DNA of 64,000 nt from Macrostomum lignano (GCA_002269645.1 NIVC01002752.1:62001-126000), one strand, 5' to 3'; positions 1 through 36,008 are shown, counted from the stretch's first letter. Translations and numbers: made by a program. Notes: generated by a model from the letters alone, not told the origin.

Positions 1-64
1 GTATCCTGTTCCAAGTTGCGCACCGATCCACCTCCGCCTTGCAGACCTGCTCCCCGCAGCAATA

Positions 65-505
65 ATGGTGTCGAAAATCATGAAAGCCGGTCGCGTCGTG
101 GTGGTGCTGTCCGGCAGGTACGCCGGTCGGAAGGCCTTCATCGTGAAGAACTACGACAAGTCCGGCTCTGACGAGAGCAGCGGCAAGTCCGGCCAGGACA
201 AGCGCAACTACTCGCACTCTCTGGTTGTGGGAGTGGACCGCTATCCGCGCAAAATCACCAGGAGCATGGGCAAGAAGAGGGCCGCCAAGAAGACCAAGCT
301 GAAGCCGTTCATCAAGATTATGAACCACAACCACGTGCTGCCAACTCGCTACGTTGTGGACACCACCTTCGACAGTAAAGTCGTGAACAAGGAGGCGTTC
401 AAGGACGCCGCGGCCAAGCGCAAGGCAATGGCACTTGTCAAGAGCCTGGAGGAGAAGTACAAGGCGGGCAAGAACAAGTGGTTCTTCACCAAGTTGCGCT
501 TCTAA
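65..505 (+). CDS. RPL27: 60S ribosomal protein L27 (eL27), coding region without introns
   Basis: 146-aa ORF with KOW-type N-terminus ([16 protein letters not shown]), [20 protein letters not shown] and the conserved C-terminus [12 protein letters not shown], matching recalled eL27 sequences end to end. Confidence 0.98.
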
Positions 506-7825: not shown

Positions 7826-7860
<35 letters not shown>

Positions 7861-7861
7861 G

Positions 7862-7904
<43 letters not shown>

Positions 7905-7905
7905 G

Positions 7906-7948
<43 letters not shown>

Positions 7949-7949
7949 G

Positions 7950-7986
<37 letters not shown>

Positions 7987-10900
7987 TAAACAAACAAAAC
8001 CAAACCAATCAACCAACTCACCCCGGGCAGATCCGAGACGCTGAGCTGCCAGACGGCCTGCAGGTCGGAGCTGACGGCCTCCAGCTGCGGGTTGTCCTGC
8101 CTGGGCAGGCTCTGCTCGCACTGCCGCAGCTGCTCAGCCAGGCGCTCGCGACTGTCCTGCGGAGCCAGCAAGGCGGGGTGGCGGGTGCACCTGCTGGCTC
8201 CGCCTGTCCCTGAAACTCGCTCTCGGATTTCCTGTCAGCCCATTGCTCAGCGCTTTCCTTCAGTTCTCATTCACCTTCTCTCCCCTTGATCTATATCACA
8301 CCTCTCCTCATCCCATCTCTCCCCTCATCCCCTCTCCCTCATCCCATCTCTCCCCACATCCCATCTCTCCCCTCATCCCCTCTCCCTCATCCCATCTCTC
8401 CCCTCATCCCATCTCTCCCCTCATCCCATCTCTCTCCCTCATCCCCTCTCCCTCATCCCCTCTCCCTCATCCCATCTCTCCCCTCATCCCATCTCCCCCT
8501 CATCCCATCTCTCCCTCATCCCATCTCTCCCTCATCCCCTCTCCCTCATCCCATCTCTCCCTCATCCCATCTCTCCCCTCATCCCATCTCTCTCCCTCAT
8601 CCCCTCTCCCTCATCCCCTCTCCCTCATCCCATCTCTCCCTCATCCCATCTCTCCCTCATCCCATCTCCCCCTCATCCCATCTCTCCCTCATCCCATCTC
8701 TCCCCTCATCCCCTCTCCCACATCCCCTCTCCCTCATCCCCTCTCTCTCATCCCATCTCTCCCTCATCCCATCTCTCCCCTCATCCCCTCTCCCTCATCC
8801 CATCTCTCCCCTCATCCCATCTCTCCCCTCATCCCATCTCTCTCCCTCATCCCCTCTCCCTCATCCCCTCTCCCTCATCCCATCTCTCCCTCATCCCATC
8901 TCTCCCCTCATCCCATCTCCCCCTCATCCCATCTCTCCCTCATCCCATCTCTCCCCTCATCCCCTCTCCCACATCCCCTCTCCCTCATCCCCTCTCTCTC
9001 ATCCCATCTCTCCCTCATCCCATCTCTCCCCTCATCCCATCTCCCCCTCATCCCATCTCTCCCTCATCCCATCTCTCCCTCATCCCATCTCCCCCTCATC
9101 CCATCTCCCCCTCATCCCATCTCTCCCTCATCCCATCTCCCCCTCATCCCATCTCCCCCTCATCCCATCTCCCCCTCATCCCATCTCCCCCTCATCCCAT
9201 CTCTCCCTCATCCCATCTCCCCCTCATCCCATCTCCCCTTCATCCCATCTCCCCCTCATCCCATCTCCCCTCATCCCATCTCTCCCTCATCCCATCTCCC
9301 CCTCATCCCATCTCCCCTCATCCCATCCCATCTCGCGCTCTCTCATATTTAACCATCTATCCGATTGCATTTATTACCGCATAAGTTTAAGACTAAAATC
9401 ATAGCTAAAAACGAAAATCCAAAAAAAGTTAATTTACACAAACAGACAGCGGCTTCACTTATTAATCACTGCAGCGGGATAGAACGATATGATATGATAT
9501 AATCTGTCAGCTATTGCGTTTACTAAATTGGATTTGACAATTCTGAACTCCCAACTTTAATAGTACATGTATGCTCATACTTGTGGCCGCGAGTTCAAAA
9601 ACGAAAAAAGACAAATTTTCTAGAAAAGAAATAGAAATAATATTTTACAACAAGAATTAGTATCAAGGAAGCCGACGCCTAATTTTTAGACTCAAGATCG
9701 CTGCATATTGGTGAACATGCTCAGTGATCTGGTGTACTGATTGTGTGCACAATAATCACGATGACCTTTTCATATTCTTGACTACTGTAAGTAGGATAAT
9801 AGCATTCATAAGTGCAGTTTATCAGATTGGGTTTCACAACATTGCTGCAGCTACTGTCTGTCGTGTACTTTTTGTGTCTGATAATTAGTAATATTTGACC
9901 GCAATAATCCATGAAGTATGAAGATGGAAATTTGCCTGTTGAATGGGCGCTTTAAGAGTTTTAAAAATCTGATAGCATCCTTAAAAGCTGTAAGAATCTG
10001 TAAAATAGTCTGTAAGATTCTGTAGAATTGGCTAAGAGACTGTAGAATTGTCTGTAAACGTCTGTAAGATTGTGCAAAATAGTCTCTAAGAGTCTGTAAA
10101 AGATTCTGTAGAATTTTCTGTAAGATACTGTAGAGAAGCCTGTAAGATTCTGTAAATCAGGCTGTGAAATTATGTAGAGCAGACTTTTAAGACTTAAGAG
10201 TCTGTAGAAGATTCTGTAAGATTTTGTAAAATACTTTGCTAAATTTTTTAAAATGGTATAAGTCTGTCGTCTGCTAATATAATTTACAAGAGCCATTAAA
10301 GAGTCTGTAGACAAGTCAAGAAGTCTGTAAAACCTGGCGGTCAGTACTGTGCACATAAGTATAGGTATTCTACAGATCCAAGCCATGCAGGGGTTGGGGC
10401 TTCTAAAGGTAGCGGAGGGCGCTAATTATTGTCAAACCTCGCCTCCCTCGCTGTCCCTTGCGCCCGGGAACAGCATCGTGAAGGAGTTCCTGCGCGGCTT
10501 CGACGCTGCCGGCGGTTTCAAACCGGACGACATCGCTTTCTGGTTGCCACCGGAGCAGATTGTGATCACCTGGCGTGTACGTTGGCAATTTAAGTATTTG
10601 AATCATCCAAGGCAACTGTCACCTCGATTGGCGTGTAGCAGTTCATTGTGGAGTCACTGTGAGGCCGACTGAGTCGCTGCTTCACTGGAGTTAATTGGCT
10701 TCTGCAGACCTAATCCTGCTTCGCAATCCCCAAGCTTCGCTCACGATCCCCAAGCTTCGCAATCCCCAAGCTTCGCTCACGATCCCCAAGCTTCACAATC
10801 CCCAAGCTTCGCAATCCCCAAGCTTCGCTCACGATCCCCAAGCTTCACAATCGCCAAGATTCACAATCCCAGGCTTCACAATCCCCAAGCTTCACAATCC

Positions 10901-12912
10901 CCAAGATTCACAATCCCCAAGCTTCACAATCCCCAAGCTTCACAATCCCCAAGCTTCACAATCCCCAAGATTCACAATCCACAAGATTTACAACCCTCAA
11001 GCTTCACAATCCCCAAGCTTCACAATCCCTAGGCATCACAATCCCTAGGCTTCACAATATCTAGGCATCACAATCCAAAGCTTCACAAAACCAATGGCCA
11101 ATTTCTCCAGTTGCCAAGCTGAGCATCTCGCAACTCACCCCTGCTGAGAGTCGCTTCTCGTTCCGTCGATCTCGACCTCTCACTCGGTCGGCATCACGAT
11201 CTGAGCAAGGATTTTTGAGTCAAAGATCTCGATCAGATGAGGTCAGGGGTCAGGTCGGGTCAGAGTTGTCCCTGTCACGCAATGTCCCTGGGGTTTAGTC
11301 GCTATTTAGGGAAACACTTTGCTAACTTGGGTGAAAAATCCATATACTAAAATGACCAATTAGCTTCTTCCATTGCTGTTTCTTTTATTTTTATTTCCCC
11401 AGCACTCAGCTCAGGTGTCACCTGATCTTTCACACGTCATCCAGGGGCCACCTCGATCTCAGCAGCATCTTGTTTGGGTTCACTTGGGGTCGCGATTCTT
11501 ATGGACCACCAACTGCTCTTTCCAATTTCAAAGAAATCGAGTTGGTGTGCAAGTTTATTAAATTATATTGGCTCAGCCTTGGTTCTAAAGTACAAAAGCT
11601 TGGATAGATACTTCTTTATCGCAGGTAAAGAAAAATTTATCTAAAAAGCCACCTCAGCAGATCATTAATTAATTAAAGTCCCTTCCTTACACAAGCATCT
11701 GAAGGATTCTAATACATAATTAACTATGCATGGGATGTCGCTTGACTTCAAACCTGGCTCGCTCGTATTCCTTGGCAAGCAACTTTTTGCTTAAAAAACT
11801 CTGCAACCAAATCTTTTTTTAAGACCTACAAAAAGTCAGTTTGCGTGATGGTTCGAAATGCTCAGGAAATTTGGAGATCGCTAGACCCTATTGAAGAAAA
11901 AATTCAAATAAAATATCAATATTAGGAAACCTGCTATTTTGCCTTTTGCCGGCTTTCAATAAAATAGTTTTATTAATTATTATTTTCCTTGAATTTGAGG
12001 AAAACAAACATGTTTTTTTTCGATTTGGAGAAGTCTGAAAACAGAAACTGCCTTTTTAATTGCCTAACAGGAAATTTTCCTAACTGAAAAATCTATGTGC
12101 CAGCAGTGACAGCAGTGACAGCAAGAGGAACAGCCAGCAGTGACAGCAGTGACAGCAGGGAACAGCCAGCAATCACAGCAGGGAACAGCCAGCAATCACA
12201 GCAGGGAACAGCCAGCAATCACAGCAGGGAACAGCCAGCAATCACAGCAGGGAACAGCCAGCAATCACAGCAGGGAACAGCCAGCAATCACAGCAAGGGG
12301 AACAGCCAGCAATCACAGCAGGGAACAGCCAGCAATCACAGCAAGGGGAACAGCCAGCAGTGACAGCAGGGAAACAGCCAGCAGTGACAGCAGGGAAACA
12401 GCCAGCAGTGACAGCAGTGACAGCAAGGGGAACAGCCAGCAGTCACAGCAAGGGAACAGCCAGCAATCACAGCAGGGAATAGCCAGCAGTGACAGCAAGG
12501 GGAACAGCCAGCAATCACAGCAGGGAATAGCCAGCAGTGACAGCAGCGAACAGCCAGCAATCACAGCAGGGAACAGCCAGCAGTGACAGCAAGGGGAACA
12601 GCCAGCAGTCACAGCAGAGAACAGCAAGGGGAACAGCCAGCAGTCACAGCAGAGAACAGCAAGGGGAACAGACAGCAGTGACAGCAGGGAACAGCCAGAC
12701 CTACCCGCAGACAGGTTCATATCCAAAGGCCGGTTGAAAAACTGCTGAGCAAAGATCTCAGCGACATTCATGGGAACTCCAGCGCTGGTAGGTGGGCAGT
12801 CCCGCTGTGACTCTCCGATCCCAGACTTTGATGCTTCATCTGTGCTCTGCAGAGCCTCAGTGGCCGGCCTGCTGGGCTGCATCTCCGGTTCAAGCGAAAA
12901 CTTTGGAAGGGC
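2378..12912 (-). CDS. PLEKHG5: PLEKHG5-like (Syx/GEF720) DH-PH Rho guanine nucleotide exchange factor, core exons
   Basis: Exons 12705-12912, 11139-11200, 10443-10569, 8022-8209, 7368-7475, 6629-6940, 5730-5903, 3764-4021, 3271-3406, 2378-2976. Phases are consistent, with one GC donor assumed at 10442. DH motifs: KQQAAIWELCHTE, RLFPCL...LHLKPALLVAKQRGGFIRPSDFQSGF, LKSLLTTPFQRITKYGLLLQEILRHT. PH motifs: IFEGDLRLKD, RCLLFTDMLLLA, PIRLDKLV, DDWLERLRRA. These align block by block with recalled human PLEKHG5. Confidence 0.92.
3487..3657. repeat. 40-bp minisatellite, ~4 units
   Basis: Unit aacatgtgacacctttatcttacaggtgactcccgtgtct. Confidence 0.9.
4120..5680. repeat. 44-bp minisatellite, ~35 units (RhoGEF intron)
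   Basis: Unit gctgtcttacccgccaccccatcactcaccctctccaaagccat, shifting to a gctgcctcaccc...cggggctag variant. Confidence 0.95.
6120..6511. mobile_element. MITE copy 2 (RhoGEF intron)
   Basis: Termini cacaaatactgaagtaactagatggacactcag / ctgagtggtccacctagtagttattctggtacctgtg. Flanks GTGCACAC / GTGCCACAC. Shares aaggcagctgaaatgact and ctactactgaact..aagtagcttacacgcaaat blocks with copy 1. Confidence 0.8.
6981..7220 (-). mobile_element. CORE-type tRNA-derived SINE, head partly lost
   Basis: Near-identical to 58111-58405. On the minus strand: B-box GGTTCGATTC, CORE-like block ending CAGCTGTAAAATGGG, and a (TTA)n tail. Confidence 0.8.
7530..7985. repeat. compound microsatellite (ACTG)n then (ACTA)n
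   Basis: Direct inspection. Confidence 0.97.
8300..9330. repeat. 16-17-bp pyrimidine-rich minisatellite
   Basis: Unit ~ccctcatcccatctct. Confidence 0.95.
9970..10360. repeat. degenerate ctgtaag/ctgtaga tandem repeat
   Basis: Recurring tctgtaagat / tctgtagaa words. Confidence 0.7.
10720..11090. repeat. 16-bp minisatellite (cacaatccccaagctt), same family as 41845-43300
   Basis: Direct inspection; contains a HindIII site in most units. Confidence 0.92.
12100..12700. repeat. ~23-bp minisatellite
   Basis: Unit gcagggaacagccagcaatcaca, with variants. Confidence 0.92.
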
Positions 12913-13179
12913 CTAACAAGCTGGCAATGACTTGCGTTGATTCGCGTCTTCTCCCAGTTCTGTTTAGCTCCCCCTAATGTTGAGCTTTTTGTCCCCTTAT
13001 TATAGCTGATGGGATTTGGAGGATTGGATTGGAGCGGCCCAGCCAGCGCCAATCAACCCGAGTGTGCTCTGTCAGGCATCTGACTGTCTCGGCCTCTCTT
13101 GGGGTGTTATTTAAGCTCGTGTGCTTTATATTGCTGTTTGATGTTCTGCCTTAGTGCTTCTGCACTGCGCTGTCAGGGA

Positions 13180-14430
13180 GGTTTCGGGATTAGAGGACGT
13201 TTTCGGGATTAGAGGACGTTTTCGGGATTAGAAGACGTTTCCGGGATTAGAATGAGTTTTCAGGATTGAGGGGAGTTTTCGGTATTGAGGGGAGTTTTCG
13301 GTATTGAGGGGAGTTTTGGAATTACATGTAAAGGGAGTTTTCGGGATGAGGGGGAGTTTTCGGGATTGATTGGAGTTTTCGGGATTGATTGGAGTTTTCG
13401 GGATTGATTGGAGTTTTCGGTATTGATTGGAGTTTTCGGGATGAGGGGAGTTTTCGGGATGACGGGGAGTTTTCGGTATTAAAGAGAGTTTTCGGTATTG
13501 ATTGGAGTTTTCGGGATGACGGGGAGTTTTCGGTATTAAAGAGAGTTTTCGGGATTGAGGGGAGTTTTCGGGATTGAGGGGAGTTTTCGGGATGAGGGGA
13601 GTTTTCGGGATTGAGGGGAGTTTTCGGGATGAGGGGAGTTTTCGGTATTAAAGAGAGTTTTCGGGATGAGGGGAGTTTTCGGGATGAGGGGAGTTTTCGG
13701 GATGAGGGGAGTTTTCGGGATTGAGGGGAGTTTTCGGGATGAGGGGAGTTTTCGGGATTGAGGGGAGTTTTCGGGATTAAAGAGAGTTTTCGGGATGAGG
13801 GGAGTTTTCGGGATGAGGGGAGTTTTCGGGATGAGGGGAGTTTTCGGGATGAGGGGAGTTTTCGGGATGAGGGGAGTTTTCGGGATGAGGGGAGTTTTCG
13901 GGATGAGGGGAGTTTTCGGGATGAGGGGAGTTTTCGGGATGAGGGGAGTTTTCGGTATTAAAGAGAGTTTTCGGGATGAGGGGAGTTTTCGGGATGAGGG
14001 GAGTTTTCGGGATTGAGGGGAGTTTTCGGGATTGAGGGGAGTTTTCGGGATGAGGGGAGTTTTCGGGATTGAGGGGAGTTTTCGGGATTGAGAGGAGTTT
14101 TCGGGATGAGGGGGAGTTTTCGGTATTAAAGGGAGTTTTCGGGATTAAGGGGAGTTTTCGGGACAAGGGGGAGTTTTCGGGATGAGGGGAGTTTTCGGGA
14201 TGAGGGGAGTTTTCGGGATGAGGGGAGTTTTCGGGATGAGGGGAGTTTTCGGGATGAGGGGAGTTTTCGGGATTGAGGGGAGTTTTCGGGATGAGGGGAG
14301 TTTTCGGGATTGAGGGGAGTTTTCGGGATGAGGGGAGTTTTCGGGATGAGGGGAGTTTTCGGGATTGAGGGGAGTTTTCGGGATGAGGGGAGTTTTCGGG
14401 ATGAGGGGAGTTTTCGAGATTGAGGGGAGT
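13180..14430. repeat. 18-19-bp G-rich minisatellite
   Basis: Unit gagttttcgggatgaggg. Confidence 0.95.
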
Positions 14431-14771
14431 TTTTGGGATTTGTGTAATTTTCGAGTTAGTTAATAATTTTTCAGTGTCGCCAAAATTTTTCTTAATTGAA
14501 GAAGAGATTTGATTGGAATTCGGATCTTTTAAAAGCCTCAGTCAGATCAGTGCAGCGGCAGCTGGATCTGCTGCATGTTGGAAAACGGCAATTGCTTGTG
14601 CTCAGCGTGGAGACAGTAGCACACCTCTCTTCGAATACAATTGGTTCTATGCAAGCCTTTTACCCTGAACCCGTCAGTTCAAAATGCGTCAGTTCATGCA
14701 TTTTTTGCTTTGTCTCCTCTCTGCCTTCCCTGCTCGGGATTTTCTGCTTTTTTGTTTAAATTCACTCATAC

Positions 14772-25090
<10,319 letters not shown>

Positions 25091-25659: not shown

Positions 25660-25990
25660 CTGTCTGACATGAACAGCCTATGACTCAAACTAATTGACAC
25701 AGTCTATGACTTAAACTGTCTATGATTCGAGCTGTCTGACTTAAACTGTCTATGGCTCAAACTGTCTATGACTCAAACTGTCTATGACTCAAACTGTCTA
25801 TGACTCAAACTGTCTATGACTCAAACTGTCTATGACTCAAACTGTCTATGACTCACACTGTCTATACCTCAAACTGTCTATGGCTCAAACTGTCTATGAC
25901 TCAAACTGTCTATGACTAAAATCATCTGACTCAAACTATGGCTCTAATTATCTATGACTCAATCTGTCTACATGACTTAAACTGTCTAAA
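25660..25990. repeat. 16-bp minisatellite
   Basis: Unit tgactcaaactgtcta. Confidence 0.9.
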
Positions 25991-26419
25991 AGATAAAAAA
26001 AATCATGACTCATATTTTTCAAAATCAGCGTTCGACTATCAGAAACTCCAGACCAAGTCAGCAGAAGTGTACTTTTATAAGTCGAGGCATTTGCTTTTTA
26101 AAATTGACATCCGCTTCCTGTTGACTGCCAAAGACTGGCTTGGGGGCTCAAATTCTGATCTGCACATCCGCCTTGCTTTATGGCCGGCACTTATCTTTTG
26201 GTGTGGGAGTTTGGACTGGTTTGAGCAATGCGAGAAGTGGCTATAGGTGAGAAGTGACGGAGAATAAGTTCAGACGATCCGTTCGACAGGAAAGGATAAG
26301 TGATAAGGAAGTGATGAATTGAATAATCAATCCAGTTTCGTAGCTCGCAACAGAGACTGGGAGAATTTCCCCTTGAGTTCTTCGAAGTAGGTGAGAATGG
26401 TAGTATTTATCAGGTTAGT

Positions 26420-26770
26420 GATAGAGGTAGACATTGGGAGAGAGGTAGTTTTGGGATGAGAGGCAGACATAGAGATAGACATACCGAGAGAGGTGGACTT
26501 GGGTTGAGAGGTAGACATAGAGCGAGAGGTAGACATAGAGGGAGAGGTAGACATAGAGCGAGAGGTAGACTTAGGGAGAGAGGTAGACTTGGGGTGAGAG
26601 ATAGACATACAGGGAGAGGTAGACTTGGATTGAGAGGTATACGTACAGGGAGAGGTAGACTTGGGGTGAGAGGTAGACATAGAGGGAGAGGTAGACATAG
26701 GGAGAGAGGTAGACTTGGGTTGAGAGGTAGACTTGGGTTGAGAGGTAGACTTGAAGGGAGAGGTAGACAC
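26420..26770. repeat. ~18-bp minisatellite
   Basis: Unit ~gagaggtagacatagagg. Confidence 0.88.
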
Positions 26771-27729
26771 ACCGAAAGGAAAAGTTACAGGCAGACATGG
26801 GGTAAGAAGTAGACAGGAGGCAGCTAGACAGAATGTGAGAGGCAGTTCTGACAGAGCAGGGTCGACTAGCAACTAGAAGAGATCGCAAGGGGAATCCAGG
26901 TAAAGAGCAACGCTTTCTTTCGTTGCCCAACAGAAAAGTGTGCTAGAATTTTAGGCGCGTTGCACTTTCAGAACAGTTGGAGTGGTAGACCGGGCCGGGG
27001 GCGAGGTCAGGCAGCATGAGCTCGCACTCACTCAGGTGAACTTGTCCTCCTGCCGAGGCGAACAGAAATAGAAAGTCGGTGTTCGCGGCTTGAGCTTTTC
27101 ACCTTCTTTTCGTTGAGCGGGAGGGAGCTTTATTTTAGAGGCAAACAGACACGGGGAATGGGGTGGAGCAGAGCTGGGAAGTGAAGGGGGAAGCCCCTGC
27201 TTCCGGACTTTTTTGTTAGGCTAAGGGGGAGCATTTAGAGTGAAGGATCCAGGGGGGGGGGTACATTAGCACCTCATTGGTCATTGGGGCAGAAGCAGCA
27301 ATATCATTGGAGAGCCTGGGAGTTGCCATGCTTGTCCGATTCGAATTCTCGCACTTTCCTAGAATTCTCGATCTCTGTGTCTCTCTGACTTAAGTGTCAG
27401 CATAATTATCTAAGAGCGACATCTGCGTCCAGTGTGCGATAGAGTGAGTGCAGTTTTATTTATGCTAATTCAATGCTCCCTCAACACTCCAGACCGCTTT
27501 TCGAAGAATAACATTCGGCCGAGTTGTTAGGTGGTCACTTTCTGCTTTCTGTGGCGAATTCCATAGAAACGAAATTTTTGTCTGTCAAGAACTAACAAAC
27601 TATTTGAAATTTGATATTTGTTAAACTTTTACTGAACTGTCGTAACTCGCGTGGGAGTTTTCTGTTAAGCACGATTTTAAAAAAGAGGGTGACTGTGGAA
27701 AACAAGGGGAGAAAAGAAAGAAGTAGGAA

Positions 27730-28570
27730 ATATGAGTTCATAAGTTTATGAGCGATTCCATGAGAGAGTTCATGATTTACTTTATGAGTGAGTTTAAGTG
27801 AGTTTATGAGTGACTTCCCACATACTAAAAATGGTCTGTCTGTGTCTTTATGACTGACTTTATGAGTGAGTTTTTGAGTGACTTTATGAGTGATTTTATG
27901 AGTGAGATTATGAGGGAGTTCATGAGTTTATGAGAGAGTTCATGAGTGAGCTCATGAGTGAGTTTATGAGTGCATTTATGAGTGACTTTATGAGTGATTT
28001 TATGAGTGAGATTATGAGGGAGTTCATGAGTGAGCTCGTGAGTGAGTTTATGAATGAGTTAATGAGTGAGTTAATGAGTGAGTTAATGAGTGAGCTCATG
28101 AGTGAGTTTATGAATGAGTTTATGAGTGAGTTAATGAGTGAGTTAATGAGTGAGCTCATGAGTGAGTTTATGAATGAGTTTATGAGTGAGTTAATGAGTG
28201 AGCTCATGAGTGAGTTTATGAATGAGTTTATGAGTGAGTTAATGAGTGAGTTAATGAGTGAGCTCATGTGTGAGTTTATGAATGAGTTTATGAGTGAGTT
28301 AATGAGTGAGTTAATGAGTGAGCTCATGAGTGAGTTTATGAATGAGTTTATGAGTGAGTTAATGAGTGAGTTAATGAGTGAGCTCATGAGTGAGTTTATG
28401 AATGAGTTTATGAGTGAGTTAATGAGTGAGCTCATGAGTGAGTTTATGAATGAGTTTATGAGTGAGTTAATGAGTGAGTTAATGAGTGAGCTCATGAGTG
28501 AGTTTATGAATGAGTTTATGAGTGAGTTAATGAGTGAGTTAATGAGTGAGCTCATGTGTGAGTTTATGAA
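27730..28570. repeat. 12-bp minisatellite
   Basis: Units atgagtgagttt / atgagtgagtta / atgagtgagctc. Confidence 0.95.
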
Positions 28571-28681
28571 CGCATCGCGAGTAATTAGTTAGTTGGCGAG
28601 TGAATAAAAAGGTTCTTGAGCTTTTAAAGCTTTCTCAGAAATAAATATAGAGAAACAACTGACAGTCTCAGTAAGCAAGAT

Positions 28682-28687
28682 TTTATT
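28682..28687 (-). promoter_or_regulatory. polyadenylation signal of the beta-lactamase-like gene
   Basis: AATAAA on the minus strand ~115 nt after the stop at 28803. Confidence 0.6.
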
Positions 28688-28802
28688 TTCGTGTCAAGCA
28701 CGTACATGTAATTATCCCATCTAAAAAAGTTTGAGTCTTGTATCATCTATCATCTATCACATCCCTGTTGCATCAAAATGTCAGGCGCCAGGCGTAGCCA
28801 GT

Positions 28803-31800
28803 TCAAATGGCTGCCAGAGCCGAGAAGCCCCCGGCAACCGCCAGAGCGACAATGGCTGACAGGCTGGCAGCGAGTTTCATGCCTGACTTTGGCGGGTCCG
28901 GGCACAGCTGGGGCGGCGTCCAGCTGCCCGGGTCCAGGCCCTTCAGTAGCAGCGTCTCCTGCTCGAAGACAAATGACTGCATCACCAGCTGGCTGGCGTT
29001 GACACTGTCGCGTCTGACAGTCAGGAAGGACAGCGGGTTGGCCCAGACCGCATACGGCACCGTGATGCTGTCGGCTGTCCGCTCGATTATGTTGCCAGGA
29101 CTGGAGGACTCCTGCGGCTCCAGCAGGTTCACGAAGAACTGATAAGGCTCCGGTTCGGCCGTCAGCGAGACAGGGATCAGCTCCAGCTTGCCTATGCCGT
29201 ACAGCAGTGTCAAACTGCCAGCGGTCTCGTTAGGGTGCACACGCACCTGACCAAATCCAAAGTTGGCGTACCTGCCACAGGTGGGAAATGTTCGATGGGT
29301 CTTTTATCTACTGCGAGATGAGGGGTTTGGGAAAGCTCTGAATCCGTGATATTAATTATTCTATTCACCTCACTCCCGCACCCACCTCACTCCCGCACCC
29401 ACCTCACTCCCGTACCCACCTCACTCCCGCACCCACCTAACTCCCGCACCCATCTCACTGCCGCAACCACCTCACTCCCGCACCCACCTAACTCCCGCAC
29501 CCACCCCACTCCTGCACCCACCTCACTCCTGCACCCACCTGAAACCTGCACCCACCTGAAACCTGCACCCACCTGAAACCTGCACCCACCTGAAACCTGC
29601 ACCCACCTGAAACCTGCACCCACCTGAAACCTGCACCCACCTGAAACCTGCACCCACCTCACTCCTGCACCCATCTGAAACCTGCACCCACCTCACTCCT
29701 GCACCTACCATCGTCCTGCACCCACCCCACTCCTGCACCCACCTCACTCCTGCACCCACCCCACTCCTGCACCCACCTCACTCCTGCACCCACCTCACTC
29801 CTGCACCCACCTCACTCCTGAACCCACCTCACTCCTGCACCCACCTCACTCCTGCACCACCCCACTCCTGCACCCACCCACTCGTTCACCCACCTCACTC
29901 CTGTACCCACCTCACTCCTGCACCCACCTCACTCCCGGACCCACCTCACTCCCAGCCCCACCTCACTCCTGCACCCACCTCACTGCTCCTTCTATTTATT
30001 CCACCCACCAATTCTAAATGGCAATGCCCTATATTTAACATCACTCTTCGATAATGTCATCACACTGCAAGCTAAAGGACAAGCAAAAATTCAATAATAA
30101 TTGCTTCTATGAGCAGCGCACCTGCCGGTCAGTAGATTAACCTCGTCACTGGTCAATTTTCGTCGCTGCATTTTGTACACCCTGGGATCGGCTGGTATTT
30201 TATTGAATATCTCGCAGACGTTGTCCTCTGTCACGAATGAGTGGTTTCTTAGCAGCAAGTCAGCGATGTACTTATTGATAACAGATGCGTAAGCGACTTG
30301 AAGGGGGGCACTGTCCACCTGTTCCAGGGTCATGTGATTGAAAACGGCCAGGTTCTGACTGGGGAAGATGTCCAACTCGCAGCGCACACCTAGCAGAGAG
30401 CCACCGTGACTGAAATCCAGGTGCCCTGTGCAGGTTGAAAAGCTGCTTTGTGCAACGCTTGAAAATCGTTTTGTTAGCTTGCAAAAGTACAAGGACAAGG
30501 TGGGTGAACGAGTGGGGTGGGTGCAGGAGTGAGGTGGGTACAGGAGTGAGGTGGGTGAACGAGTGGGTGGGTGCAGGAGTGGGGTGGTGCAGGAGTGAGG
30601 TGGGTGCAGGAGTGAGGTGGGTACAGGAGTGAGGTGGGTGAACGAGTGGGTGGGTGCAGGAGTGGGGTGGTGCAGGAGTGAGGTGGGTGCAGGAGTGAGG
30701 TGGGTGCAGGAGTGAGGTGGGTGCAGGAGTGAGGTGAGTGCAGGAGTGAGGTGGGTGCAGGAGTGAGGTGGGTGCAGGAGTGAGGTGGGTACAGGAGTGA
30801 GGTGGGTGCAGGAGTGAGGTGGGTGCAGGAGTGAGGTGGGTGCAGGAGTGAGGTGGGTGCAGGAGTGAGGTGGGTGCAGCAGTGAGGTGGGTGAACGAAT
30901 GGGGTGGGTGCAGGAGTGAGGTGATATAGGAGTGACGTGGGTGCAGGAGTGGGGTGAGTGCAGGACGGAGGTGGGTGCAGGAGTGAGTTGGGTGCAGGAG
31001 TGGGGTGGGTGCAGGAGTGGGGTGGGTGCAGGAGTGAGGTGGGTGCAGGAGTGGGGTGGGTACGGGAGTGAGGTGGGTGCAGGAGTGGGGTGGGTGCAGG
31101 AGTGGGGTGGGTGCAGGAGTGGGGTGGGTGCAGGAGTGAGGTGGGTGCATATACGAGTAATATGAGAAAAGACTCACTTCCATACCAGGTCCGCTTCCAG
31201 CCACGGCCGTAGGACTCGATCTCCCAGTCCGGCAGGTCGCTGACCACGCTGGCATTGTACAACTGCGGGTTGAACAGGGCGTTCCCAACTCCTGCTGCCA
31301 AGGCGTTCAATGGTCGAAACTGTCCCGGCGCCGGCTCGTAGACGGAGTGTTTGGGGCTGGCGAGGTGGCGCATGTACCGCGACATGTCCGGCAGCGAGGC
31401 CAAAATGCCGCCGGCAGCTTCAACAAACCTTGTAGCTCTATGCAATACATTAATTTAGTGACGCTTTGTCTTACTAGTAGTAGGATGATAAACGTTTTTC
31501 ACTTGTTTTTAAGATATTGATCAAAAAATTGAAAAATAATGCCAAAATCGTGTCAAGTTAGCCTGGCGTCGCAACTCATCACAGCTTAACTAGAATTTAA
31601 AGCCCAGACTCACCGCTCCATCTTGGACATCTCCAGCGGCACTTCCAGCCGCTTGTACTGCTGATTGATGACGACTCGGTCCAGCAGTTGCTTCTGCTTG
31701 ATCTCTGAGCTGCCGTGAGTGTCCGTCATGCCCAGCGGTTGCCAGAGAAACTCGCGCATGTACTGGACGAAGCTGCGGTTCGTCAGGCGTTGCACAGCCA

Positions 31801-33231
31801 TATCAGCGATTGTCCATACCAGGTTGTTGTAGACGAACGAGCCGCGGAATTCTGAGGCCGTCTTGAGTCGCCCGACGTGTCTAAAGATGGGAAACAGGAT
31901 TTGGGGAACTCGGGGTAATCTGCTCAAGGTGTCTCAGGTAGGGTGAGAGGAGGACTCAATGTAATCTGCTCAAGGTGTCTCAGGTAGAGTGAGAGGAGGA
32001 CTCAATGTAATCTGCTCAAGGTGTCTCAGGTAGAGTGAGAGGAGGACTCAATGTAATCTGCTCAAAGTGTCTCAGGTAGGGTGAGAGGAGGACTCAATGT
32101 AATCTGCTCAAGGTGCCTCAGGTAGGGTGAGAGGAGGACTCAATGTAATCTGCTCAAGGTGTCTCAGGTAGGGTGAGAGGAGGACTCAATGTAATCTGCT
32201 CAAGGTGCCTCAGGTAGAGTGAGAGGAGGACTCAATGTAATCTGCTCAAGGTGCCTCAGGTAGAGTGAGAGGAGGACTCAATGTAATCTGCTCAAGGTGC
32301 CTCAGGTAGAGTGAGAGGAGGACTCAATGTAATCTGCTCAAGGTGTCTCAGGTAGGGTGAGAGGAGGACTCAATGTAATCTGCTCAAGGTGTCTTAGGTA
32401 GGGTGAGTGGATCAGGACTCAATGTAGTCTGCTCAAGGTGCCTCAGGTAGGGTGAGTGGATCAGGACTCAATGTAATCTGCTCAAGGTGCCTCAGGTAGG
32501 GTGAGTGGATCAGGACTCAATGTAGTCTGCTCAAGGTGCCTCAGGTAGGGTGAGTGGATCAGGACTCAATGTAGTCTGCTCAAGGTGCCTCAGGTAGGGT
32601 GAGAGGAGGGCTCAGTGCAAGGATAGGAGTACACTTACTTGGCCAGATCCTCTTTGCTCTGCCACTCATTCAGATACCACATGCTGTCGTGTCTGGACAG
32701 TCCAGTTCTATGGCTCAGCATGTCGTCAATGGTGACAATCTCGCTGAGTCCGTGATCGGCAAACCAGAAGCTCTGATCTCCAATCAGCTGTTTTATTGGA
32801 GTGCTGAACAAGCTGCAAGATAAATACCGAATGAAATTTGTACTTTTAATTACTTTGTCTCCGGCCGGCTACCGATTTTAGATTTGCTTACCTAAACGAC
32901 TGATTCTTAAGTTGTTCGCGAAGGTGCTTCTCCACTTGAACCAGTGCCGTGCCAAACATTCCTTGCTAACGGAGGCCAGGTACAGCAGCCGTACATCAGT
33001 GTCGGCAATGTCTTTGATCTCGCCGCTAGCCAGCTTCTCCAGTTTGACGCTGAAAATCTCCTGGTTAGCGTGCACCACTGCTGCGTGCAGCTGCGGCACC
33101 GACTGACAGCGCATGGTGCGCTCCAGCACCCGGCGGACTGCCGCGGTGTCCAGCGGGTAATAGGAGGCACCCGCCGCCACCAGCTGCAAGCAGCACAGAA
33201 GGACGAATGCCAGGTTCCACACAGACTGCAT
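28803..33231 (-). CDS. secreted serine beta-lactamase / class C-AmpH-PBP family protein with DUF3471-like C-domain and hydrophobic (GPI-like) tail; ~604 aa after fixing one frameshift
   Basis: Exons 32892-33231, 32639-32812, 31614-31880, 31178-31437, 30122-30425, 28803-29271, all GT-AG. Signal peptide MQSVWNLAFVLLCCLQLVAAG. Motifs: S-V-S-K (Ser codon 32971-32973), TIDDMLSHRTGL, FVYNN (YxN), PLGM, AAGGILAS, FSHGG, GRYANFGFGQV. Ends LAASLSAIVALAVAGGFSALAAI*. Phases need +1 nt near 32960. Confidence 0.9.
29366..29985 (+). repeat. 17-bp minisatellite, arm A (intron 5 of the beta-lactamase-like gene)
   Basis: Unit cacccacctcactcctg. Confidence 0.95.
30499..31149 (-). repeat. 17-bp minisatellite, arm B, inverted relative to arm A (intron 4)
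   Basis: Plus-strand unit gtgggtgcaggagtgag is the reverse complement of arm A. Confidence 0.95.
31915..32610. repeat. 46-bp minisatellite, ~15 units (intron 2)
   Basis: Unit ctcaatgtaatctgctcaaggtgtctcaggtagggtgagaggagga. Confidence 0.95.
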
Positions 33232-33569
33232 TATGCCTAGTTTTGTTGTTTCAGCTGACTGAGTCTTGGACTTTTACTCTGCTAATTGAACAGCTCTAAA
33301 AAAGGTTCTTTTAAGAAAGCTCGTTCGGCAGTGCGGCTTATCTTTTGAGATCTTTTGACTCACTCTTTGTGCTTTGATTGAGTCCAATACGAACTAGAAG
33401 ATAAGATACCAACGAGAGAGCAGCTCACCTTGTGGTACTTTCTCCATTTTATAACCAATTAAATATTTTAAAGTTCAACTTGGTAGTGACGGTTTTGCTG
33501 CTACTAAAATTGACGTGCATAGCTTATGCATTCCATGTAGACGCCTTCGGTTCGCCCTTGTGCCTTTTT

Positions 33570-35830
33570 TGTTTGAAATCTGCCTCTCTCCGCTCTTTTT
33601 GACTTTGAATCTGCCTCTCTCCGCTCTGTCTGACTTTCAATCTGCCCCTCTCCGCTCTGTCTGACTTTCAATCTGCCCCTCTCCGCTCTTTTTGACTTTG
33701 AAATCTGCCTCTCTCCGCTCTTTCTGACTTTCAATCTGCCTCTCTCCGCTCTTTCTGACTTTCAATCTGCCCCTCTCCGCCCTTTCTGACTTTCAATCTG
33801 CCCCTCTCCGCTCTGTCTGACTTTCAATCTGCCCCTCTCCGCTCTTTCTGACTTTCAATCTGCCCCTCTCCGCTCTTTCTGACTTTCAATCTGCCCCTCT
33901 CCGCTCTGTCTGACTTTCAATCTGCCCCTCTCCGCTCTGTCTGACTTTCAATCTGCCTCTCTCCGCTCTTTTTGACTTTGAATCTGCCTCTCTCCGCCCT
34001 TTCTGACTTTCAATCTGCCTCTCTCCGCTCTGTCTGACTTTCAATCTGCCCCTCTCCGCTCTGTCTGACTTTCAATCTGCCCCTCTCCGCTCTGTCTGAC
34101 TTTCAATCTGCCCCTCTCCGCTCTTTTTGACTTTGAATCTGCCTCTCTCCGCCCTTTCTGACTTTCAATCTGCCCCTCTCCGCTCTGTCTGACTTTCAAT
34201 CTGCCCCTCTCCGCTCTGTCTGACTTTCAATCTGCCCCTCTCCGCTCTGTCTGACTTTCAATCTGCCTCTCTCCGCTCTTTTTGACTTTGAATCTGCCTC
34301 TCTCCGCCCTTTCTGACTTTCAATCTGCCTCTCTCCGCTCTTTCTGACTTTCAATCTGCCCCTCTCCGCTCTGTCTGACTTTCAATCTGCCCCTCTCCGC
34401 TCTGTCTGACTTTCAATCTGCCCCTCTCCGCTCTGTCTGACTTTCAATCTGCCTCTCTCCGCTCTTTTTGACTTTGAATCTGCCTCTCTCCGCCCTTTCT
34501 GACTTTCAATCTGCCTCTCTCCGCTCTTTCTGACTTTCAATCTGCCCCTCTCCGCTCTGTCTGACTTTCAATCTGCCCCTCTCCGCTCTTTTTGACTTTG
34601 AATCTGCCTCTCTCCGCCCTTTCTGACTTTCAATCTGCCTCTCTCCGCTCTTTCTGACTTTCAATCTGCCCCTCTCCGCTCTGTCTGACTTTCAATCTGC
34701 CCCTCTCCGCTCTTTCTGACTTTCAATCTGCCCCTCTCCGCTCTTTCTGACTTTCAATCTGCCCCTCTCCGCTCTGTCTGACTTTCAATCTGCCCCTCTC
34801 CGCTCTTTCTGACTTTCAATCTGCCCCTCTCCGCTCTGTCTGACTTTCAATCTGCCCCTCTCCGCTCTTTTTGACTTTGAATCTGCCTCTCTCCGCCCTT
34901 TCTGACTTTCAATCTGCCTCTCTCCGCTCTTTCTGACTTTCAATCTGCCCCTCTCCGCTCTGTCTGACTTTCAATCTGCCCCTCTCCGCTCTTTCTGACT
35001 TTCAATCTGCCCCTCTCCGCTCTTTCTGACTTTCAATCTGCCCCTCTCCGGTCTGTCTGACTTTCAATCTGCCCCTCTCCGCTCTTTCTGACTTTCAATC
35101 TGCCCCTCTCCGCTCTTTCTGACTTTCAATCTGCCCCTCTCCGCTCTTTCTGACTTTCAATCTGCCCCTCTCCGTCCTTTCTGACTTTCAATCTGCCTCT
35201 CTCCGCTCTTTCTGACTTTCAATCTGCCTCTCTCCATCCTTTCTGACTTTCAATCTGCCCCTCTCCGCTCTGTCTGACTTTCAATCTGCCCCTCTCCGCT
35301 CTTTCTGACTTTCAATCTGCCCCTCTCCGCTCTTTCTGACTTTCAATCTGCCCCTCTCCGCTCTTTCTGACTTTCAATCTGCCCCTCTCCGCTCTTTCTG
35401 ACTTTCAATCTGCCTCTCTCCGCTCTTTCTGACTTTCAATCTGCCTCTCTCCGCTCTTTCTGACTTTCAATCTGCCTCTCTCCGTCCTTTCTGACTTTCA
35501 ATCTGCCTCTCTCCGCTCTTTCTGACTTTCAATCTGCCTCTCTCCGCCCTTTCAGTCCTTAACTCTGCCTCTCTCCGCCCATTCAGTCCTTAACTCTGCC
35601 TCTCTCCGCCCTTTCAGTCCTTAACTCTGCCCCTCTCCGCCCTTTCAGTCCTTAACTCTGCCTCTCTCCGCCCATTCAGTCCTTAACTCTGCCTCTCTCC
35701 GCCCTTTCAGTCCTTAACTCTGCCCCTCTCCGCCCATTCAGTCCTTAACTCTGCCTCTCTCCGCCCTTTCTGACTTTCAATCTGCCTCTCTCCGCCCTTT
35801 CTGACTTTCAATCAGCCTCTCTCCGCTCTT
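33570..35830. repeat. 31-bp minisatellite, ~70 units, with higher-order structure
   Basis: Unit tctgactttcaatctgcccctctccgctctt. Confidence 0.96.
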
Positions 35831-36008
35831 TCAGTCCGTAGGGTTTCGACCATAGAATAAGCAAACGCTAGCCAAACAATAATGCTATACCTATAGATTC
35901 AAAACGATCAAAACGATTTTTCATATCTGCACGTCTTGATTAAAGTTGAATAGCTCATATCCGCCAGCCGCAATTCACGCTATGAACTTCATCGTTGCCC
36001 CTATGATA

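Follow-up and report, generated by a model that had tools for sequence, protein, structure and literature searches.

A spliced Macrostomum lignano gene of the S12/PF00144 family predicted to encode a cell-surface serine hydrolase of an animal gigasin-6-like clade

Gene structure and genomic context

What would an animal do with a protein built on the fold that penicillin-binding proteins share with beta-lactamases, where would that protein act, and can the assembled copy of its gene still encode it? These questions are raised by locus BOX15_Mlig019427g1 in the 64,000-nucleotide stretch of DNA that we analysed (the window), which is identical to the Macrostomum lignano contig NIVC01002752.1. 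The locus is a real, spliced M. lignano gene, whose features are collected in Table 1. All five introns have GT..AG borders, and from the junction of exons 1 and 2 onwards the splice junctions agree exactly with those of the RNA-guided public model PAA55447.1 (P0014); the annotation method behind such models is described in PMC5730564. The introns hold host-type tandem repeats and the adjoining genes are host genes. Three paralogues are found in M. lignano, one of them 43% identical to the window protein. The gene is already present in public databases, and its family is an uncharacterised one of marine invertebrates. The C at position 33133, in exon 1, is specific to the window.

Table 1. Positions of the gene and its features, counted from the first letter of the window
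Feature	Position	Strand	Remarks
Whole gene, start codon to stop codon	28803-33231	minus	six exons, five GT-AG introns
Start codon	33231-33229	minus	
Exon 1	32892-33231	minus	start codon, signal peptide, beginning of PF00144, SVSK, frameshift site
Predicted signal peptide, codons 1-21 (MQSVWNLAFVLLCCLQLVAAG)	33169-33231	minus	likely cleavage after AAG; hydropathy heuristic only
S87-V-S-K90, SxxK motif	32962-32973	minus	nucleophile Ser and general-base Lys; family catalytic columns
GG run (GGG in other copies)	32961-32962	minus	1-nt gap directly 3' of SVSK
ATG of M92	32957-32959	minus	start of the deposited 513-aa PAA55447.1
Exon 2	32639-32812	minus	conserved SHRTGLSRHD segment
Exon 3	31614-31880	minus	Y189-N-N191 motif (31831-31823)
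Exon 4	31178-31437	minus	AAGG...D segment, omega-like region
Exon 5	30122-30425	minus	H354-G-G356 (30408-30400), end of catalytic domain, then linker
Exon 5 linker	within 30122-30425	minus	N408-H-S and Cys418 (30216-30214)
Exon 6 as a whole	28803-29271	minus	
Exon 6, first part	28887-29271	minus	beta-rich C-terminal domain (diverged DUF3471/lipocalin-like) and Pro-rich stalk with Cys572
Candidate GPI-attachment signal, S578-I604	28806-28886	minus	S-G small residues, short spacer, 23-residue hydrophobic end, no cytosolic residues
Stop codon	28805-28803	minus	

Domain architecture and relatives

By its sequence, the protein is a predicted two-domain serine hydrolase of the MEROPS S12/PF00144 fold, the one that penicillin-binding proteins share with beta-lactamases. 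An HMM search matches residues 33-374 to PF00144 at 73 bits (cut-off 27; E 3.3e-20), and the paralogue at 71 bits. This bears out a first-pass annotation of the locus, which had read the protein as a PF00144 enzyme with the motifs SVSK, YNN and HGG: S87/K90, Y189/N191 and H354/G356 fall in invariant or near-invariant catalytic columns of 12- and 148-sequence alignments, and these columns are conserved: all three M. lignano paralogues keep them, as do about 95% of the 148 relatives.

The same annotation had pointed to the gigasin-6-like proteins of invertebrates, correctly. In an exhaustive HMMER search animal proteins rank first, the nearest relatives coming from molluscs, annelids, brachiopods, nemerteans and hemichordates under the labels 'gigasin-6-like', 'protein flp-like' and 'uncharacterized'. 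A profile built from the animal members scores animals at 421 bits or more and bacteria at 326 bits or less. For the window protein the animal HMM gives 212 bits and an HMM of bacterial PF00144+PF11954 proteins 133, and for the paralogues the values are 196 versus 112 and 171 versus 116; held-out animal, bacterial and fungal controls were correctly classified by this pair of models. Cys42 and Cys418, the latter in a post-catalytic W-[LI]-N-x-[ST]-x-C linker, occur in each of the three M. lignano paralogues as well as in 22 of 23 and 23 of 23 tail-bearing members, respectively; in most bacterial sequences they are missing or fall in gaps. On these sequence comparisons the window protein belongs to an animal-specific clade comprising molluscs, annelids, brachiopods, nemerteans, M. 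lignano and hemichordates; no vertebrate, nematode or echinoderm protein appears among the 120 best matches of the clade profile. With members such as Pecten maximus gigasin-6-like, Physella acuta XP_059148723, Lingula anatina XP_013409911 and Saccoglossus kowalevskii XP_002732829 it shares a predicted signal peptide, PF00144 with S-x-x-K, Y-x-N and H-x-G, the cysteine pair, a beta-rich C-terminal domain and, as in most of them, a terminal hydrophobic tail. The M. lignano proteins nevertheless stand apart from the other members: they are about 20-25% identical to them, score about 200 bits with the clade HMM where those reach 400-500, carry two further conserved cysteines (C363 and C572) and lack even a sub-threshold PF11954 signal. 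In a simple neighbour-joining tree rooted at its midpoint, they form a long branch outside the animal group and outside any small clade.

Outside animals, the closest relatives of the family are serine hydrolases of bacteria with PF00144+PF11954, a point in favour of contamination by bacteria or of horizontal transfer from them in very recent time. Against such an origin stand the GT-AG introns with their host-type repeats, the host genes on the flanks, the paralogues, the higher score on the animal than on the bacterial HMM and the animal-specific cysteine pair, and we consider it effectively refuted. The first-pass annotation had likewise called this a host gene with five spliceosomal introns.

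The second domain, which that annotation described as DUF3471-like, is a less direct case. Neither the window protein nor the paralogue, searched at full length and by C-terminal region, matches PF11954 (DUF3471) at E<=10, so that the HMM search went against the description and what speaks for it is transitive and structural evidence. PF11954 signals in the animal relatives are sub-threshold (E 1e-5 to 4e-2), with Haliotis at 59 bits. In hhalign, the C-terminal domain aligns with the start of the animal domain at a probability of 94% (E 1e-7), and in the same register with the bacterial domain at an insignificant E of 0.028. The predicted model places a helix and eight strands after the catalytic domain, with pLDDT falling to 33-48 over the latter half of the C-terminal domain; the AlphaFold models have pTM values of 0.71 and 0.74. 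The best Foldseek matches, with alignments of 409-589 columns, are enzymes of two domains (Lip3 9sn1, SurE 6ksv, Pab87 2qmi, IS11 7spn and Ulm16), the top ones covering 409-490 of 513 residues. The modelled domain thus resembles a diverged lipocalin-like barrel of the kind found in Pab87, Lip3 and SurE.

Of the relatives with solved structures, the nearest are D-stereospecific enzymes of two domains: peptidases, cyclases and esterases (Pab87, Lip3, SurE and IS11). Pab87 of Pyrococcus abyssi (PDB 2qmi), at 148 bits on the animal-clade profile, is the best solved sequence relative of the clade; like bacterial CubicO peptidases it has an S12 domain followed by a helix and an eight-stranded lipocalin-like barrel (PMC2651629), and it shares the three motifs, H-x-G included. 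It is, however, a cytosolic, self-compartmentalising archaeal octamer with neither signal peptide nor membrane anchor, and the C-terminal domain of the window protein has diverged from that of Pab87 and the CubicO peptidases below PF11954 detection. Pab87 is D-stereospecific and takes the terminal D-Ala off muropeptides (PMC2651629); Lip3 cuts D-L peptide bonds of lipopeptides (PMC12903863). The top structural matches over both domains, namely the DL-peptidase Lip3, the PBP-type cyclases SurE and Ulm16, the esterase IS11 and the D-aminopeptidase of Ochrobactrum (1ei5), are without exception serine enzymes, and what they recognise are D-configured residues or esters. They differ in being bacterial and either soluble or NRPS-associated, and are 14-19% identical to the window protein, a distance over which specificity is not transferable.

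Staphylococcus aureus Flp and FmtA (4gdn, 5zh8) are near in the catalytic domain (Flp 142 bits) and are the origin of the NCBI name 'flp-like', but are single-domain bacterial proteins without a C-terminal barrel. LACTB, too, is found in animals, descends from low-molecular-weight PBPs of bacteria and has kept its catalytic motifs. The spiralian/hemichordate clade was not sampled in the survey of metazoan lineages by Peitsaro et al. 2008 (PMC2266909). With its mitochondrial presequence, LACTB is a filament-forming protein that lacks a C-terminal barrel and secretory or GPI signals, whereas the N-terminus of the window protein is signal-peptide-like by our heuristic; at 88 bits on the clade profile versus 142-148 for Flp and Pab87, LACTB was rejected as the identity of the protein, in line with the distinction drawn by the first-pass annotation. 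Its description of the layout as that of AmpH and class C enzymes proved imprecise. E. coli AmpH and AmpC share the PF00144 fold with SxxK and YxN, but have neither the C-terminal domain nor a eukaryotic anchor signal. The AmpH equivalog model (NCBIfam NF007943) gives 28 bits against a cut-off of 266, and a class C identity fails on the third motif, which is H-G-G in place of the K-T-G of AmpC, and on the clade profile, where class C enzymes and R61 reach 65-72 bits.

The interrupted reading frame

The first-pass annotation took the locus to encode the full protein and overlooked a frameshift directly after SVSK, because of which the assembled copy in the window does not encode it. The exons add up to 1814 nt, two more than a multiple of three; the stretch from the start codon through SVSK is in frame 0, the remainder of the protein lies in another frame, and translation of the assembled sequence from the ATG ends after about 119 codons. 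At 32964-32957 the window reads AAG-GA-ATG, against AAG-GGA-ATG (SVSK-G-MFG) in a sister copy (L001) and in UniProt A0A1I8IWF8, in both of which an uninterrupted coding sequence joins the nucleophile serine to the rest of the domain. Since one G is missing after SVSK, the deposited PAA55447.1 begins at the next methionine, M92, and lacks both the signal peptide and Ser87.

The one-base gap is probably a homopolymer consensus error of the Mlig_3_7 assembly, and the real locus therefore probably encodes an intact protein of 605 residues. It may instead be a real deletion, which would make the window copy a genuine pseudogene, redundant after recent genome duplication and with its function carried by other copies. 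Mlig_3_7 is a PacBio-based assembly polished with Illumina and RNA-seq reads by Pilon, so that an indel surviving in the deposited sequence could be real. Redundancy is on hand, because blocks duplicated with >=95% identity make up 180 Mb of the M. lignano genome (PMC5730564). A different lesion is seen in the sister copy L001, a 28-nt deletion in exon 3 that is hard to ascribe to sequencing, and gene copies may therefore be decaying in this neopolyploid genome. The lesion in the window is nevertheless a homopolymer contraction by one base, a typical long-read error, and a lesion of the same type (CCCC to CCC) occurs in a paralogue copy within 380 nt otherwise 100% identical to an intact copy. 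Moreover, GGG is present in an ML2-derived model that carries the window-type substitutions and so represents the same allele type. Comparison of the window copy with L001 gives 13 synonymous changes, 3 non-synonymous ones and a dN/dS of 0.07, which indicates purifying selection up to very recent time. Short reads with the true GGG would be expected to align to L001, from which exon 1 of the window copy differs by a single substitution, leaving the error unpolished. On balance we consider a genuine pseudogene rather unlikely, though the most serious of the alternatives.

Probable surface anchoring and proposed function

Apart from the frame, the first-pass annotation had proposed a signal peptide and a GPI-type tail with a possible omega site near KSG; the layout is conserved, and the site itself is atypical. 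The protein has two segments only that lie above the hydropathy threshold, residues 1-21 and 582-604, the second of which ends at the last residue (...FSALAAI), as well as six N-x-S/T sequons. A signal-like N-terminus combined with a C-terminal hydrophobic run that lacks a cytosolic tail is the GPI-type layout. It recurs in about 20 of 28 animal relatives and in the 43%-identical paralogue, whose N-terminus is equivalent, and the hydrophobic tail is missing from bacterial relatives. S578-G-M is the best-placed omega candidate, with an atypical Met at omega+2; among the alternatives A583 and S585, A583-A-S satisfies the residue rule with almost no spacer. We conclude from these features that the protein is probably secreted and GPI-anchored, and anchoring looks ancestral in the animal clade because so many of its members combine signal peptide and tail.

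By analogy with its relatives, the protein most likely functions as a serine hydrolase at the cell surface, with D-amino-acid peptides or esters as its substrates. The protein would enter the endoplasmic reticulum by way of a cleaved signal peptide and there be N-glycosylated and disulfide-bonded, the likely disulfide being the animal-specific pair Cys42-Cys418. A GPI anchor would replace the C-terminal hydrophobic peptide near S578 and leave the enzyme attached to the cell's outer surface. An acyl-enzyme would form at Ser87 with the aid of Lys90 and Tyr189, the H354-G-G strand lining the oxyanion hole and the lipocalin-like domain perhaps capping the site. Substrates, by analogy with Pab87, Lip3, the D-aminopeptidase, SurE and FmtA/Flp, would most likely be D-amino-acid-containing peptides or esters, among which the stem peptides of peptidoglycan, D-alanyl esters and lipopeptides of bacteria are candidates, with beta-lactams less likely.

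Other readings of the tail and of the active site have to be weighed against this one. The tail could be a retained type I membrane-spanning anchor without a cytosolic tail, or the protein could simply be secreted: the 23-residue segment has the length and hydrophobicity needed to cross a membrane (KD ~2.2), the omega region is imperfect, and the tail is wholly missing in Capitella, Saccostrea and Pecten gigasin-6-like. Yet the segment runs to the very end of the protein and no charged stop-transfer residues follow it, and small residues, a spacer of 6-10 residues and a terminal hydrophobic run recur across phyla. The tail of the paralogue, K-A-A-G followed by an Ala-rich and weakly hydrophobic run, fits the omega rule well and is typical of a GPI signal but would make a poor transmembrane helix. 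We therefore regard a transmembrane or purely secreted form as unlikely. Distinctly unlikely, in our view, is a secreted or surface protein whose main role is binding or structural, whether it captures D-peptides or fragments of peptidoglycan or serves, like oyster gigasin-6, as a glycoprotein of a matrix or cue. Gigasin-6 occurs in glycosylated form in the shell matrix and is part of a larval settlement cue (PMC9456362), one paper suggests that it may be an inactivated lactamase relative (PMC5854119), and some clade members, such as P0025, have lost catalytic residues (Gly for Ser, H-x-D for Y-x-N). The six catalytic positions are, however, kept not only in the M. lignano paralogues but in nearly all of the 28 animal members, Pecten 'gigasin-6-like' included, and catalysis is favoured because this conservation extends over bilaterian time. 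A role as a true beta-lactamase, in which beta-lactam antibiotics from the environment are detoxified at the surface of the animal, would fit the PF00144 fold with SxxK, YxN and HxG, and class C enzymes are present among the structural matches. It is nonetheless highly improbable, given that class C enzymes and R61 lie so much further off than Pab87 and Flp and that the third motif is H-x-G as in D-peptidases. The usual fate of S12 peptidases with beta-lactams is acylation and inhibition, not turnover.

The complete explanation, in which a spliced gene of the animal clade encodes a GPI-anchored, two-domain S12/PF00144 surface hydrolase of D-amino-acid substrates and the frameshift is an artefact, thus seems to us moderately probable. 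For such an enzyme in M. lignano, a surface role at the host-microbe interface would be reasonable.

Exon structure and reading frame of the locus

BOX15_Mlig019427g1 is encoded on the minus strand and consists of six exons, with GT..AG boundaries at all five introns. The top database matches of its protein are Macrostomum lignano proteins. The locus of the deposited 513-residue product PAA55447.1 (P0014), once reverse-complemented, is identical to positions 25803-35959, which identifies the window as part of NIVC01002752.1 in assembly Mlig_3_7 (GCA_002269645.1). The exon junctions of the deposited protein agree with ours residue for residue and, since Mlig_3_7 gene models derive from RNA-seq-guided transcripts and TransDecoder (PMC5730564), the splicing pattern has RNA support. 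The locus tags gave no match in the full-text literature.

Features of the gene and its surroundings (window coordinates)
Feature	Position	Strand	Basis or remark
Exon 1	33231-32892	-	eye reading and script
Exon 2	32812-32639	-	eye reading and script
Exon 3	31880-31614	-	eye reading and script
Exon 4	31437-31178	-	eye reading and script
Exon 5	30425-30122	-	eye reading and script; 304 nt
Exon 6	29271-28803	-	eye reading and script
Stop codon	28805-28803	-	TGA
Intron 2 array	31915-32614		46-nt unit, 15 copies, 96% identity
Intron 4 array	30498-31149		17-nt unit, ~39 copies
Intron 5 array	29366-29984		17-nt unit, ~37 copies
Downstream array	27847-28569		12-nt unit, 60 copies
Upstream array	33577-35832		31-nt unit, 73 copies
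Upstream exon in P0002	36344-36198	-	joined behind ATG-CAG
ATG-CAG with AG acceptor site	33231-33225	-	AG acceptor lies directly behind ATG-CAG
DH (RhoGEF) gene region	6632-24061	-	joined to part of exon 6 in P0004
Open frame near window start	2-502	+	presumably resembles ribosomal protein eL27

The first-pass annotation had described a protein with all three catalytic motifs. Its observation is partly confirmed and its interpretation partly supported: a spliced PF00144 gene is present and the motifs occupy the catalytic columns, but the translation silently crosses a frameshift behind SVSK, and the frame is broken in the assembly. The exons total 1814 nt, not a multiple of three; frame 0 covers the ATG through L-A-S-V-S-K, and all downstream sequence lies in a different frame. 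One G of a GGG run is absent at 32962-32961, right behind the catalytic SVSK. Positions 32964-32957 read AAG GA ATG, where the sister genomic copy L001 and the ML2-derived UniProt model A0A1I8IWF8 (P0002) have AAG GGA ATG, encoding SVSK-G-MFGTALV. Translated from its ATG, the assembled copy stops after about 119 codons. The deposited protein begins at the Met right after the gap and has neither signal peptide nor Ser87. We rejected programmed frameshifting and a micro-intron as explanations for the GG site, as it offers no GT..AG and the other copies merely contain one extra base.

We consider the one-base gap probably an assembly error, although it is plausible that it is real and reflects the decay of redundant copies in a neopolyploid genome. 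Mlig_3_7 is a Canu PacBio assembly that was polished with short reads, which speaks for a genuine lesion. So does L001 (NIVC01000623.1, BOX15_Mlig033915g1), 98% identical and intact at the GGG site: 28 nt are missing from the beginning of its exon 3 (L001 9900-9960, corresponding to window ~31880-31838), which shifts the frame and accordingly makes its deposited protein start at MAVQRL, and its exon 4 has a 3-nt in-frame insertion (ATT). Such indels make real decay plausible. The lesion in the window gene, however, is a homopolymer contraction by one base, and P0002, which shares D144, K342 and the absence of the Ile insertion with the window copy, is intact at the GGG site. The same kind of contraction separates L003 and L004, two contigs of a 43%-identical paralogue: a single CCCC->CCC in exon 1 (L003 ~3956-3962, L004 ~4240), the rest of 380 nt being identical, truncates the deposited PAA65751.1 to the Met behind its S-I-S-K motif, and its error signature is that of the window gene. 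Exon 1 differs from L001 by only one substitution, from which we infer that short reads of a true GGG allele would align to L001 and the error would persist through polishing. A synonymous C/T difference between the copies, in codon 33 (window 33133), lies 172 nt from the GG run. Between the window copy and L001 there are 13 synonymous and 3 non-synonymous changes (dS 0.032, dN/dS 0.07, with codons 172-186 masked at the exon 3 indel), indicating purifying selection on the gene until very recently. PAA55447.1 is the N-terminally truncated product of this gap and, in our assessment, quite likely artefactual; functional or phylogenetic work on the locus should use the intact allele instead.

Tandem arrays and fused gene models

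The introns consist mostly of tandem arrays, a 46-mer in intron 2 and a 17-mer (37-39 copies) in introns 4 and 5, and similar arrays are present across the entire 64-kb window (44 TRF rows at a score threshold of 300, several rows representing one array at different periods). The two 17-nt arrays have opposite orientations, so that exon 5 sits between inverted arrays of about 620-650 bp. Pairing of two 200-nt pieces is predicted at -335 kcal/mol, and the arrangement could favour exon-5 skipping or circularisation. L001 has the 17-nt array in intron 4 only. Intron 2 is nearly all 46-nt unit; it appears to be missing from the paralogue on L003/L004, where the counterparts of exons 2 and 3 form a single unbroken tblastn block. 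The flanking arrays start ~230 nt beyond the stop codon and ~350 nt upstream of the ATG.

Older ML2-based UniProt models join the gene to its neighbours: P0002 links an upstream exon to an AG acceptor right after ATG-CAG, and in P0004 a piece of exon 6 is fused with the DH (RhoGEF) gene downstream. These fused models may represent polycistronic transcription units that are separated by trans-splicing of a spliced leader, a common process in M. lignano (PMC5730564). The Macrostomum leader reportedly has ATG as its last three bases (PMC10468722), so the true start of the gene could come from the leader.

Family affinity and domain composition

PF00144 matches the window protein at 73 bits (cut-off 27), as the first-pass annotation had supposed. 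S87, K90, Y189, N191, H354 and G356 lie in invariant columns of alignments with distant relatives. Of 148 relatives, about 95% keep these six positions, as do all three M. lignano paralogues. The proposed AmpH/class C layout is imprecise: the AmpH equivalog model scores only 28 bits (cut-off 266), which rejects orthology, and class C membership is rejected by the animal-clade profile, on which AmpC reaches only about 70 bits. By sequence, Pab87 (148 bits) and Staphylococcus aureus Flp (142) are nearest to that profile, with LACTB (88) and R61 (66) also well behind; LACTB membership is likewise rejected, in agreement with the earlier claim.

Word-indexed searches returned only M. lignano proteins and distant matches at 24% identity, and animal relatives surfaced only in an exhaustive HMMER search, in which a profile of M. 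lignano proteins recovered 4268 relatives. The top non-Macrostomum matches were animal (Solemya, Haliotis, Physella "protein flp-like", Mactra, Lingula, Saccostrea, Owenia, Lottia, Elysia, Ylistrum, Tubulanus and the hemichordate Saccoglossus); the highest-ranked bacterium with a name (Bryobacteraceae) reached 104 bits. A profile of animal members matched Pecten "gigasin-6-like", Gigantopelta "AmpH-like", Capitella, Octopus, Glandiceps and Ptychodera at 421 bits or more, followed after a gap by bacterial PF00144+PF11954 "CubicO group peptidases" at 326 bits or less; no vertebrate, nematode or arthropod protein was among its best 120 matches. Neighbour-joining did not resolve the position of the M. 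lignano branch, which is long. In HMM competition, which sorted held-out animal, bacterial and fungal proteins correctly, the window protein scored 212 bits against the animal-clade HMM versus 133 against the bacterial one, which rejects contamination and upholds the assignment to the host. Cys42 and Cys418 (W-[LI]-N-x-[ST]-x-C post-catalytic linker) are found in essentially all animal members and missing from most bacterial relatives. The competition and this signature together indicate that the gene, though divergent, belongs to a long-standing animal clade and is not a recent transfer. An earlier classification of metazoan PBP-like proteins into LACTB, LACTB-like 1 and 2 and esterase-like groups sampled no spiralian or hemichordate members of the clade (PMC2266909). 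Among P0021 (Solemya), P0022 (Haliotis) and P0025 (Logan) are tandem fusions of 985-1052 aa, each with two complete catalytic-plus-barrel units, and the nucleophile is lost in at least one clade member (P0025, with Gly in place of Ser and H-x-D in place of Y-x-N); both multi-unit proteins and likely pseudoenzymes thus belong to the clade.

The C-terminal region had been called DUF3471-like. Even at E<=10, PF11954 matched neither the window protein nor the paralogue. Animal relatives show sub-threshold matches at the equivalent position (E 1e-5 to 4e-2), and Haliotis reaches 59 bits. Aligned by hhalign to the animal alignment, the M. lignano region meets the start of the PF11954-like domain (probability 94%, E 1e-7); against the bacterial alignment the register is the same, at an insignificant E of 0.028. 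AlphaFold models of the intact paralogue P0003 (pLDDT 66.7, pTM 0.71) and of the 513-residue window ORF P0014 (pLDDT 70.5, pTM 0.74) both place a helix and then about eight strands behind the catalytic domain, the second half at low confidence. Their top Foldseek matches cover both domains and include the DL-peptidase Lip3, SurE, Pab87, Ulm16, IS11 esterase and D-aminopeptidase. The label is right in spirit, given the helix-plus-strands and two-domain matches, but Pfam membership is not demonstrable.

Surface location and possible function

By hydropathy, the window protein has only two hydrophobic segments, residues 1-21 and 582-604, the second reaching the last residue, together with six N-x-S/T sequons and four conserved non-signal cysteines. 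The paralogue ends in ...EPKAAGAVTGTLLATAAAAVAATAAFSG, a textbook GPI-signal layout. About 20 of 28 animal members have both a signal peptide and a hydrophobic C-terminus that follows small residues and a short spacer; in bacterial relatives the last strands are hydrophilic. The proposed GPI tail draws its strongest support from this conservation, although the best-placed omega candidate of the window protein, S578-G-M, is imperfect. Judged from sequence, a conserved GPI signal in the window protein and its clade is probable. We found nothing specific in the literature on GPI anchoring of mollusc beta-lactamase-domain proteins.

The only clade member with experimental knowledge is oyster gigasin-6, a glycosylated shell-matrix protein and settlement-cue component (PMC9456362) noted as carrying a beta-lactamase domain (PMC5854119). 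The structural relatives that have been characterised use D-configured substrates: D-Ala-pNA is preferred by Pab87, which also removes the terminal D-Ala of muropeptides (PMC2651629), and Lip3 cleaves D-L bonds in lipopeptides (PMC12903863). By analogy with these relatives, we favour a Ser87-dependent surface hydrolase of D-amino-acid-containing peptides or esters; a true beta-lactamase or a non-catalytic binding role is less likely.

The discovery is modest, because the gene and domain were already annotated (beta-lactamase-domain protein) and the family is named in databases, though uncharacterised. Three points are worth carrying forward: the frame is broken in the reference, the clade spreads over several phyla, and a probable GPI signal is conserved. 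Animals are not known to make peptidoglycan, yet members of this clade in several phyla retain an intact PBP-type active site together with a secretory and a probable GPI signal, which implies a conserved extracellular enzymatic job. M. lignano is transparent and amenable to RNAi and transgenesis, which, with its three paralogues, makes it a practical animal in which to find that job. A broader proposal, which we regard as rather unlikely, is that this is an ancient bilaterian family (Spiralia and hemichordates) of GPI-anchored, catalytically competent, D-stereospecific serine hydrolases on epithelial surfaces that target bacterial D-amino-acid molecules. Proposed targets would be peptidoglycan stem peptides, D-alanylated teichoic acids and non-ribosomal lipopeptides. 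If true, such enzymes, with their origin in bacterial PBP-like proteins and separate from LACTB, would give animals a layer of digestion, defence or microbiome sensing, encoded in their own genomes, that has gone unrecognised.
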